Shown: positions 43,701 to 52,896 of the stretch, piece by piece
Layout of the letters: each line of letters starts with the position of its first letter
Position numbering within the stretch: the first letter of the stretch is position 1
Assembly (NCBI GenBank): GCA_033442325.1
Contig: JAWQFM010000027.1
Location: 191,844 to 255,843, forward strand
Source of the DNA: Salpingoeca rosetta
Lineage: Eukaryota; Protista; Choanoflagellata
Direction: 5' to 3'
DNA length: 64,000 bases
Notes under the pieces: generated by a model
Databases searched by the model: none
Told to the model about the DNA's origin: nothing
Seen by the model: only the letters and a program-made list of their open reading frames with translations
Position numbers and translations under genes: made by a program

Positions 43701-46082
43701 TGAGAACACACGCACATACACACACACACGCACATACATACATACATACACACACACACACACACAGGTGCTGATGCACATACACGCGCAACTGCGATGT
43801 GTTAGTCCTTGTTGCTTCGCCCGTGCACCGCCATCTCATCACCACCATCACCACCACCACCACCATCACTACCATCACCACCACCATCATCATCACCATC
43901 ACCACCCCCGTCGCCGTCGTCAGAGCCCCAAGATGAAGAAGAAGCGGTCGTGGCCAAATCTCTTTGGCCGAAAGCAGAAAGCAGCCGACTCAAACGAAGA
44001 GGCAGAGGTGAGAAGGGTGTGTGTGTGTCCGTGTGTGTCGTGATTATGTGTGTGTTTGTGTCGTGTTGTGCCAAGAGCACATAACCACCGCTTCATTGCT
44101 TGTCACCACTCGCACCATCATCACCACCACGCACTCACCATGCACTCACCACGCACTCACCACCACCACCACCACCAGTTCCTGTCGAAGGTGAAGGGTG
44201 ACTCTGCGACGATGGGTGTTGCTATTGCCTCAAAGGCGGTGACCAAGACCAAGTCCACAAACTACCTCACCCTGGCGCCAAACGAAAAGCTCGACATCCT
44301 CGAGATGAAGGCCTGCCCTCGGTCAGTTACCTGACACATGCACACTTGCTATCACACGCACACACACACATGCTATCACACACACACACTTGCTATCACA
44401 CACAGACACATGCACAGACATACACAGACACACATGCAAACACATGCAAGTGCCTTGGTCTTGCTTGTTCTGTGGTGCTGTTGATGTGCTGGTATATCAC
44501 TGATTTGTCCCACTCGCTCCCATTCTCACTCCCATCCACCACCACCACCACCTCACGTCCAGCGGCACGTGGGTGTGCAAGAATGCGTCTGGGATGATTG
44601 GATTTGTGATGACCACGGACGTGACGCTGGATGCGCAGTCCGTTCGCGGGTTCCTCGACGCAATCCCAAAGCCGCAAAGGGTATGTGGCGCTAATGAGGA
44701 CGGCTGGTGGTCAGAGGAGTTGTGATTGGCTGGCAACTATTGGTGTGTGCAAGCCATACCTGTCACGCACACACACACACACACACACACACACACACAC
44801 ACACACACACACACTACACACACACACACACACACACACACACACACACACACACAATCATGCGCCACGACTGCACGCTGCCGTCGGGCGAGCACAGGCG
44901 CAGGTGTCTGCGGAAGGGCTTCCGATTGAGACGCTCTCATCCTCTGCCGGCATCAACGTGCTGCCCACGGAGCAGTGCCAGATCAAGGCGAAGCAGGCGA
45001 GTGAGGCAACACAGCGGCTGCTGGGCACGCCGGGCGGTGCCAGTGATTCTGACAAGGCGGAAGGTGATGGTGATGGCGATGGCGATGGTGGTGGTGATGG
45101 TGAAGATGATGGTGCCGAGGCAAAGGCGGAGAGTGGTGAAAAGGAAGGAGAAGAAGCGAGTAGTGACGCAACAGCAACAGCGGCAGCAACGGAGGATGAG
45201 GCAAGCGGCGACAAGCAAACCGACAGCGACCAGCAGAAGTCGAGCGATGAAGACACATCAGAAGCCAACACGGACAGCGCCACCGACACCACAACCAAGC
45301 GCGCCCCAAGTCCCGGTTACGACCGTCTCGCGTTCCCTGCGAAAGGCGGCAGCGGCAGCGGTGGTGTTAATGGCGATGGTGGTGGTGATGGTGATAGTGA
45401 GGCCATCCCCGAGGACACATATGCCGTGCCCGATGAGCTGACGGGCGCTGAGCCGTCGGGGCTCATGTACGATGACACGCCAATCACTGCACCGGTTAGT
45501 CGCAGACGTGATGTGTGTGTGTGTATGTGTGCATGTGTGTGTGTTTTTTTTTGTTGTGTGTGTGTGTGTGTGTGCATGCGTGCGTGCATGCGTGCGTGGT
45601 CTGTGTGTTGTATTGATGCGGTTGTTGCTACCTTGCACGAACCCTCACTGTCACCATCACCGCGTCCCTGCCAGGGAGCCGATGACATGTACGAGGCCGT
45701 GACGGATGCGCTTGGAAGTGCTCCCTCCACCCAGCCCCCGCCCGTCCCAGCACCGCGCAAGCAGAGCGGTATGCGTGTCATGTGGGATGTTTGTGTGTGC
45801 GTGTGCGTGTGTGCGTGCGTGTGGGTGGTCGTGTGGGGGGGGGGGGGTGATTTGTGTGGGTGATTTGTGCGTGTGTGCATGTGTGATTTATGAGATTTGT
45901 TTCAGTGTGCGCGTGTTTCAGCGTCTGTGTTGATTCTGTTGCATTTGTTGCTCACAAGATGTTGCAACGTGTCGTTTGTGATGGCAGAGCCTGTCATGGA
46001 GCCTTTCTACGCACAACCAACCGAGAGCAAGGTGCTGGAATATGGTGGTGGTGGTGATGATGAGGGTGGAAGGGGTTGGTGA
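40740..46082 (+). CDS. ADAP/FYB-like adaptor: disordered Pro-rich, multi-tyrosine protein with one helically extended SH3 (hSH3)-like domain; 3' end uncertain
   Basis: Starts MSTP|DDATG..PVPKPR|PRPRPRG. Exons 44179-44321 and 44563-44680 give FLSKVKGDSATMGVAIASKAVTKTKSTNYLTLAPNEKLDILEMKACP|xGTWVCKNASGMIGFVMTTDVTLDAQSV, which resembles the ADAP/PRAM1 hSH3 (..P.GKW..R...G.YGY.KTT.V.ID..S). Many acidic-Tyr motifs and PxxPxR motifs are present. Confidence 0.65.
42869..42984 (+). repeat. 60-bp coding tandem duplication (NGGVRTATTHGPSTADGG x2) in the adaptor gene
   Basis: aatggtggtgtgcgaacagcgacaacacacggcccttcaacagcagacggtggtga occurs at 42869 and 42929. Confidence 0.95.
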
Positions 46083-52000: not shown

Positions 52001-52896
52001 CACAATTCACGCATGTTGGAGCTTGCGTCCAGCTGATATGCGAGGCACAGCAGCAGCGTCTTCAAGTGGCTGCACACATGACACCGGCCAGCGTCGTAGT
52101 ACACGACACGAGGCGAGTGCCGCTGATGCTGCTGTTCTGCTGGTTGGTGCGATTGCTGCGCAGGTGTGGAAGCGGTTGCGCTGAGCCAGGATGCGACGAT
52201 GGCGTGGGCGTCCACGCCTCCCTTGGCCTCGACAGCGACCACACGGCCGCGGACACCCTGTGCGCGGATGAACGACGGCATACCAGGCGTGGGCGTTGAG
52301 AAGCCAGCAGCATCGGCGATGGCAGCGTGAGCTGGCTGGAAGACATCGAGCAGCGCCGAGGCCACGGCTTGCTGGCGTTCCCGTGCTGTGTAGAGCGGCC
52401 ACCCTTGTGGAGGATCGCGCGTGAGCAGCTGCCAGAGTGGCGTGTCTGTTTGGTGGTGATGATGTTGTTGCTGCTGTTGTTGCTGCTGTTGTTGCTGCTG
52501 TTGTTGCTGCTGTTGTTGTTGGTGTTGTTGCTGCTGTTGTTGTTGGTGTTGCTGTTGTGGTCGTTTTGTGGTGGGTGGTGTTGCGGGTTGAGGTGGGAGG
52601 CTGCGCCGGCGGCCAGTGGAAGCCGACTTGCGGGCAGTTGCGGTCGCACTGCCTGTTGCTGCAGCATCATTAGCGTTGATGGTGGTGGCACCTTTCAAGT
52701 CCTGCTGCTGTTGCAGTTGTTGATTCCTTCCTCCCACTTCTACACGTGTTCGCACCTGCCTTGGCCGGCCTTGGTCCTGTTGCTGCTGCTGCTGTTGTTG
52801 CTGTTGTTGCTGTTGCTGTTGTTGTTGCTGCTCTGCGTCGGTGGACGATTCCCCACCAGGCCTGCCACCAAAGTCAAGCACACGCACCCGAATCAT
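46007..52896 (-). CDS. NLR-like protein: polyQ N-terminus, degenerate NACHT/STAND domain (TEP1/NWD/NPHP3-type) and ribonuclease-inhibitor-type LRRs
   Basis: One reading frame can be spliced through exons 52896-51502, 51130-50760, 50476-50371, 50163-49625, 49434-49329, 49077-49010 and 48847-48764, then LRR exons down to 46232. Motifs: [20 protein letters not shown]...TWLPP...[27 protein letters not shown]. LRRs include [27 protein letters not shown] and [28 protein letters not shown]. Start and last exon are uncertain. Confidence 0.65.
48670..48713 (+). repeat. (TA)n microsatellite in an intron of the NLR-like gene
   Basis: About 22 perfect units; the only long TA tract in the window. Confidence 0.95.

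Follow-up and report, generated by a model that had tools for sequence, protein, structure and literature searches.

NLRs of animals, such as NOD2, NLRC3 and NLRX1, carry a nucleoside triphosphatase (NTPase) domain, a helical and winged-helix (WH)-like region and C-terminal leucine-rich repeats (LRRs) of the ribonuclease inhibitor (RI) type, in that order. A domain-based survey by Yuen et al. found NACHT proteins of the choanoflagellate Salpingoeca rosetta only in combination with ANK, TPR or WD40 repeats, and likewise those of M. brevicollis, and its authors proposed that bona fide NLRs are animal-specific (PMC3879445). Richter et al. reported in 2018 proteins with both NACHT and LRRs in several choanoflagellates, with no CARD or Death domain (PMC6040629). 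In plants, the NLR Pb1 of rice still works without a P-loop, and a scaffold or helper role has been proposed for P-loop-less NLRs of this type (PMC3478704). Here we describe a minus-strand gene at 52896-46007 of a 64,000-nucleotide stretch of S. rosetta DNA (contig JAWQFM010000027.1, positions 191,844 to 255,843 of the forward strand; hereafter the window), for which an earlier note had proposed an NLR-like architecture with a dead P-loop. The gene is expressed, and we consider it probable that it encodes a cytosolic protein of 1173 amino acids (aa) with the NLR order of parts, whose diverged, P-loop-less STAND-type domain serves as a nucleotide-independent scaffold or sensor. An ortholog is present in Barroeca monosierra, a close relative of S. 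rosetta (PMC11389367).

The predicted protein starts with a disordered, polyglutamine (polyQ) N-terminus, followed by a diverged STAND-type (NACHT/NPHP3_N-like) domain, a helical and WH-like linker and about ten RI-type LRRs. It thus shares with animal NLRs the order of its parts, as well as a predicted STAND/AAA+ fold class and LRRs that, in the window protein and its ortholog, match those of NOD2, NLRP1 and NLRX1 in sequence; unlike them, it has no Pfam NACHT match, no Walker A motif and no first Walker B acid, and a disordered polyQ stretch takes the place of a CARD, PYD, Death or other effector domain. The NACHTs of the NWD, TEP1 and NPHP3 type (PF24883, PF05729) were the commonest targets of our feature and shape searches (NACHT, NPHP3_N, NWD2-like and TTC41-like), but these keep their P-loop and are joined to WD40, TPR or ankyrin repeats, as Yuen et al. 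describe for the NACHTs of S. rosetta (PMC3879445), whereas here the P-loop is gone and the repeats are LRRs. The proteins of Richter et al. are similar in their choanoflagellate host, their two-part layout and their lack of CARD or Death domains; however, they were found through Pfam NACHT (PMC6040629), whereas the protein described here is invisible to Pfam and, in the libraries searched, had kin only in Barroeca monosierra. With rice Pb1 and the Arabidopsis NLRs that have degenerate P-loops it shares an NLR architecture retained without the nucleotide loop, although the plant proteins belong to the NB-ARC clade, bear an N-terminal CC domain and have an established immune role. It is best described as a P-loop-less, highly diverged variant of the NLR-like or STAND-LRR kind, found so far in two choanoflagellates.

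The gene comprises 16 exons and extends from its start codon, ATG at 52896, to the stop codon TAG at 46009-46007. Each of the 15 introns is GT-AG, the frame is kept at every joint, and the product, with three polyQ tracts and one polyserine (polyS) tract, has no internal stop. The region is eukaryotic DNA, its exons short and its introns rich in (GT)n/(CA)n. We compared RNA reads and contigs over 48341-53600; the contigs of two runs were treated as RNA assemblies, the contigs being spliced, and a third run supplied raw stranded RNA reads. Five joints were seen in RNA (51501/51131, 49624/49435, 49328/49078, 49009/48848 and 48763/48495), whereas joints 50759/50477 and 50370/50164, as well as all those below 48341, where a (GT)n repeat occupies 48234-48340, are predicted as GT-AG, in phase and colinear with the ortholog. 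First mates of the stranded reads lay nearly all on the plus strand, as expected, for the usual library type, of an RNA from the minus strand. A contig of approximately 1.87 kb ran from 49761 to 48341 through the spliced exons and continued for 1290 nt, leaving room for the remaining LRR exons (approximately 700 nt) and a 3' untranslated region (UTR). A second contig joined 52445-51501 to 51129-50759 and extended for a further 193 nt, a length that matches the 106 nt of exon 3 followed by 87 nt of exon 4, with the end inside a CAA repeat; other breaks between RNA contigs sit on polyQ or polyS codon repeats, within continuous open reading frames (ORFs). That the exons belong to a single mRNA is therefore well supported: the single spliced frame from the polyQ N-terminus to about ten RI-type LRRs, as put forward in the earlier note, was recovered, and the joints and contigs speak against separate transcripts for the N-terminal and LRR exons.

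Exon 1 (51502-52896, aa 1-465; this and all following exons on the minus strand) is backed by its ORF and by RNA contigs; it begins with the conserved MIRVRVLDF and also encodes two polyQ tracts and the P-loop-NTPase-like domain, and its start codon agrees with that of the ortholog, which begins MVRVRTLDL. Exon 2 (50760-51130, aa 466-589), a helical segment with a Gly/Ser-rich insert, is joined to exon 1 in RNA contigs from two studies and in a read. Exon 3 (50371-50476, aa 589-624) has RNA depth and in-phase predicted GT-AG joints, and holds a WH-like block at 50463-50401 that aligns with ILLCSVSVAPAGLTWSEASSIL of the ortholog. Exon 4 (49625-50163, aa 625-804), with polyQ, polyS and two conserved blocks, is supported by its ORF, by RNA contigs covering 50037-49829 and 49761-49624, and by its donor joint 49624/49435. 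Both joints of exon 5 (49329-49434, aa 804-839) occur in RNA contigs and raw reads, and both joints of exon 6 (49010-49077, aa 840-862), a pre-LRR or first LRR-like segment, in RNA contigs. A 14-exon chain joining 49625 directly to 48847 was discarded, since the RNA joints include the exons at 49434-49329 and 49077-49010.

The LRRs, approximately ten repeats of 28-29 residues, begin with exon 7 (48764-48847), which encodes one repeat (LDGITF...LQEL), aligns to the ortholog and has its joints seen in RNA. Exon 8 (48341-48494), whose joint 48763/48495 is present in reads and contigs, encodes two repeats with a weak LRR_4 match, and exon 9 (47795-47955), with predicted in-phase GT-AG joints, an irregular LRR-region segment that includes a block with nine of 15 residues identical to the ortholog. 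Exons 10-15 (47587-47504, 47355-47272, 47124-47041, 46815-46732, 46637-46551 and 46318-46232, with predicted GT-AG joints) measure 84 or 87 nt each, encode one RI-type LRR each and all end in phase 2. Their junctions fall at an identical position of the repeat (L-x-x-L / x-L), and this constancy of phase and junction is the pattern that exon duplication would leave. The LRR of exon 14 (46637-46551) has no counterpart in Barroeca, either because the number of repeats differs or because the exon is missing from that gene model. Single LRR exons are too short for Pfam scoring; the ortholog, however, matched LRR_6 at 1.3e-8, and BLAST of the window LRRs returned LRR_6 proteins, some of them NACHT-bearing, with expect (E) values of 1e-8 to 1e-19. 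In the Protein Data Bank (PDB), the LRR half of the ortholog matched ribonuclease inhibitors, NOD2, NLRP1, NLRX1 and several axonemal RI-like proteins. At the other end of the protein, the N-terminus is polyQ-rich and of low complexity, with a short conserved first strand, and Pfam gave no match to CARD, PYD, Death or any other effector domain in aa 1-465 or in the N-terminus of the ortholog.

The ortholog was found by an exhaustive phmmer search with residues 165-465, which returned only one cluster (E 1.3e-5); this includes a 1008-aa Barroeca monosierra protein (EukProt; P0003). The window's own protein was not among the returns and seems to be absent from the libraries searched. The two proteins are colinear from their first residues to the LRRs, with 34% identity over 927 columns, the identity being 28% for the N-terminus, 29% for the NTPase-like part and 48% for the LRRs. 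The position of intron 1 is common to both species: in the Barroeca genomic contig (L001:1808-1830) a GT donor follows directly after PTKK, and intron 1 of the window gene lies after PTK (51502/51501). That contig has a G+C content of 36% versus approximately 55% here, a difference in keeping with the inserts rich in Q/A/G/S that the window protein carries. Three word-indexed protein searches gave no additional kin. Residues 120-660 of the ortholog had zero matches, the only return for the whole of exon 1, from Eimeria, was a polyQ artefact, and the matches to the full ortholog were LRR-only, among them P0008, which is without likeness in the N-terminus.

Every motif named in the earlier note was located on the minus strand. 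The strand-loop motif that includes the Walker A position occupies 52242-52186, and within it the Walker A-position loop (52204-52230), between predicted strand beta1 and helix alpha1, has V-D-A in place of the canonical residues. Predicted strand beta2 and the helix after it, RVVYYDAG...LLLCLAYQL (RILYYDAG...LLYLIQQL in the ortholog), lie at 52030-52110; the Walker-B-position strand, predicted beta3, at 51772-51804 (IVLAVSNFDYM in the ortholog); and the Sensor-1-position strand, predicted beta4, at 51670-51699 (VHLVLSMCHSS in the ortholog). The patterns [AG]xxxxGK[ST], any GK[ST], and hhhhD[DEG] occur nowhere in the 1173 aa of the window protein or in its Barroeca ortholog, whereas both motifs were found in two NACHT proteins used as positive controls (P0014 and P0009). 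At the Walker A position the window protein reads EAKGGVDAH and the ortholog ESKSGSDAH, with Asp-Ala in place of Lys-Ser/Thr. The Walker B position reads IIAICNVDH and VLAVSNFDY, respectively, so that the first acid is Cys, as had been noted, or Ser, and the second Asp is retained.

Between the two species, the replacement loop and the helix that follows it rank among the best-conserved blocks outside the LRRs. Since the loss is common to both and the loop is conserved, it represents a maintained state and not recent decay. The earlier statement that Walker A had been lost thus holds for the motif, but not in the sense of decay, and an ortholog with an intact P-loop, for which a search had been suggested, did not emerge, since the one found lacks it too. 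The missing P-loop, being conserved between two species, is not the mark of a pseudogene, and the protein would be a stable pseudo-NTPase.

To model the domain we used AlphaFold on the window protein and on residues 120-660 of the ortholog, with exons 1 and 3 as the alignment rows from the window. In the models of both proteins, residues ~200-430 form a P-loop-NTPase-like alpha/beta domain. The ortholog model contains a five-stranded alpha/beta core at a predicted local distance difference test (pLDDT) score of 64-86, on which the conserved blocks fall in order: IVVVES is strand 1, GSDAH... begins helix 1, RILYYD is strand 2, RIVLAVS strand 3 and VHLVLSMC strand 4. Compared with 48,161 PDB representatives, this core was closest to Cdc6/Orc1 (2qby_A; Z 14.6, root-mean-square deviation 2.8 Å over 164 residues) and TnsC (Z 14.2), followed by Avs3 (Z 12.9), NRC2 (Z 12.7), ZAR1 (Z 12.1), CED-4 and Dark (Z 11.7), and MalT and Apaf-1 (Z 10), and Foldseek returned ORC4/5, Dark, MalT and Avs4. 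The model of window residues 165-465 has the same strand order and recovered these families with Z values between 11.0 and 8.4 (2qby_A 11.0, Avs3 9.4, NRC2 9.2); its Foldseek matches were weak (E 0.013 or more), and its neighbours by shape in the ESM Atlas were ORC2, nSTAND1, NPHP3_N/NACHT and TTC41-like clusters, with TM scores of 0.43-0.51. An AAA+/STAND-type P-loop NTPase is thus a reasonably supported fold class for these models, and the middle region did not fail to model as such a fold.

Language-model features formed a separate line of evidence and placed the domain among NACHT and NPHP3_N clusters. The best match of the window piece was a NACHT cluster from eukaryotes (0.93, with 178 of 256 features in common), an NWD2-like cluster scored 0.90 with 173 features, and nine of the ten best matches belonged to one clan; for the ortholog all ten best matches were NPHP3_N, nSTAND, NACHT or AAA_16, of the STAND clan, although ten same-clan matches are also possible for one in three shuffled proteins. 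Beyond the core, the protein gave weak matches (0.82-0.86) to helical domains of the NACHT-associated kind, namely nSTAND_NTPase4, SNaCT14 and NCH2, and around the conserved GLTW block three short helices and a possible hairpin were predicted at pLDDT below 50. We take YYDAG-x-C...LL-x-L-x-x-QL to resemble the strand and helix that follow the P-loop helix in NPHP3_N-type NACHTs.

Several results, together with the figure for shuffled proteins, weigh against a STAND-type domain in an NLR-like protein. Pfam did not report NACHT, NPHP3_N, NB-ARC or AAA_16 on pieces of the window protein (E up to 10) or on the ortholog (E up to 1), for which it reported LRRs only; PADLOC and NCBIfam were blank, and a profile search against PDB sequences gave zero matches. 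Alignment by hhalign to five NACHT domains had a probability of 1%, from a non-significant match of 16 columns located on the P-loop strand. The AlphaFold models average a pLDDT of 53 and derive from alignments of 2-3 sequences, with the helical/WH part modelled at pLDDT below 50. Their top structures are Cdc6/ORC and TnsC, and animal NACHT NLRs fall outside the top 50. RNA depth, taken from one quarter of a 6-gigabase run, was low at 0.4-16. Homology to NACHT would thus rest on low-confidence models and embedding similarity in two family members, and a part in immunity would be speculative. Of the NACHT/STAND identity claimed earlier, the AAA+/STAND-type fold and the NACHT-, NPHP3_N- and NWD-like features stand, whereas Pfam is silent, hhalign is not significant and the best structures are Cdc6/ORC and NB-ARC/Avs proteins. 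The layout and the language-model features make a STAND origin likely; within the STAND NTPases the domain is a candidate, not a demonstrated, member of the NACHT family proper. The independent assembly put forward in the earlier note would be conjectural: the domain is too divergent for a tree, and proteins joining NACHT to LRRs are already on record from several choanoflagellates (PMC6040629).

Fold alone does not separate STAND from ORC/Cdc6-type AAA+ proteins. The alternative that survives best, although we consider it unlikely, is a P-loop-type fold of non-NACHT/STAND descent (Cdc6/ORC-like, another AAA+ or a lineage-specific Rossmann-like fold), in which case the NLR likeness would be architectural only. 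The top structures, namely Cdc6/Orc1, ORC subunits, TnsC and MuB, favour this possibility, as does the missing link to NACHT at the sequence level. The pseudo-ATPases ORC2, ORC3 and Sir3 offer a parallel in that an AAA+-like fold is retained as a structural module without catalysis, and Sir3 (3te6_B, Z 12.6) and ORC2 (7jps_B and 7cte_B, Z approximately 12-12.8) were among the best structural matches; however, these are replication and silencing proteins, free of LRRs, for which we found no sequence similarity to the window protein. Moreover, STAND NTPases (Avs3, NRC1/2, ZAR1, CED-4, Dark, Apaf-1, MalT and 6mfv) lie within 1-3 Z units of the top match, the features name NACHT, NPHP3_N and nSTAND but never ORC/Cdc6, and the succession of NTPase, helical/WH-like region and C-terminal repeat sensor is the STAND layout.

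Less probable still is that the middle region holds no NTPase-derived domain and is a fast-evolving, partly disordered, lineage-specific sequence, the whole being an RI-like LRR protein with an idiosyncratic N-terminal half. This would account for the low mean pLDDT and very shallow alignments, for a Foldseek search of the window model without any E below 0.01 and for the blank hidden Markov model (HMM) searches, and chance can yield middling Z values together with same-clan feature matches. Nevertheless, the order of the five strands is identical in two models, with the conserved blocks falling on strands; Z values of 11-15 over 150-200 residues exceed the 7-8 that is typical of the best chance match for non-helical models; all top matches are ASCE P-loop NTPases; and the 178 features in common with the NACHT cluster exceed 170, the level typical of true family members. 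It is very improbable that the conserved loop E-x-K-x-G-x-D-A-H still binds nucleotide or another phosphate ligand in an atypical working switch. The loop does belong to the most conserved blocks, with one Lys and one Gly retained, and the second Walker B Asp is present as well; in either plausible register, however, Asp occupies the phosphate-binding Lys site and Ala the Mg-binding Ser/Thr site, Cys or Ser stands in place of the first Walker B acid, and we know of no P-loop variant of this form.

We therefore favour a P-loop-less STAND-type domain. With the Walker A Lys-Ser/Thr and the first Walker B acid absent in both species, the canonical ADP/ATP switch of NLRs would be impossible, and the most likely mechanism would be a nucleotide-independent role as scaffold or sensor. 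Partners or ligands would be bound by the LRR horseshoe, with the fossil NOD module and the linker as a fixed platform for structure or oligomerisation, and the former P-loop would be retained for structure or for a contact not involving nucleotide. The disordered N-terminus may contribute multivalent, low-affinity contacts.

The two ends of the gene model deserve comment. At the 5' end, an in-frame ATG occurs at 53325 with no stop up to the ATG at 52896, and RNA contigs reach 53151 and reads 53600; the translation of 53325-52897 (minus strand) is of low complexity and (CA)n-derived, and this stretch is probably 5' UTR. At the 3' end, the last exon (46007-46034, minus strand, ending NTLLSVGCA and the stop) is predicted and uncertain; it is in phase and has a good acceptor, and in its place the ortholog has one further LRR. 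We rejected an alternative splice into an LRR-like ORF past the stop at 46007, as the acceptor is poor in its sole in-phase GT-AG pair (donor after 46230, acceptor before 46002) and the resulting register fits the LRR consensus worse, and the strong acceptor at 46035 was preferred. The same frame is open after the TAG (46009-46007) down to 45905, reading KGSMTGSAITNDTLQHLVSNKCNRINT..., with a hydrophobic pattern that aligns with the extra terminal LRR of the ortholog, MRNTNLYTTGKNALMEAASSHPNVTVLL. This could reflect a stop that truncates the protein in this species, a splice that went unrecognised, or readthrough, and the DNA at 46009-45905 may also be the 3' end of a convergent gene. This plus-strand neighbour (44631-46082; ORF 44631-45863, with YxxP-like motifs) apparently overlaps this gene at its 3' end and 3' UTR. 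Within intron 2, many reads and contigs end at 50645-50653, a GGTGG-rich low-complexity stretch with a C>A change at 50653, and show unrelated continuations; they probably come from other loci.

A more far-reaching possibility, which we regard as rather doubtful, is that the protein is a cryptic descendant of the NACHT-LRR stock of animal NLRs and that, in the lineage of S. rosetta and Barroeca, it has been kept as a sensor constitutively free of nucleotide, with LRRs that recognise cues from bacteria or from self; any connection with the sensing of microbes would be conjectural. If this were true, S. rosetta would possess an NLR-type architecture despite surveys that found none, and P-loop-independent NLR action would predate animals. 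The NTPase domain has diverged beyond detection by HMMs, and the gene would thus have been missed by both domain surveys, indicating that at least one further NLR-shaped protein escapes them (PMC3879445, PMC6040629). As S. rosetta is genetically tractable and among the closest relatives of animals, this gene may offer a case in which to study a STAND module without a nucleotide switch.

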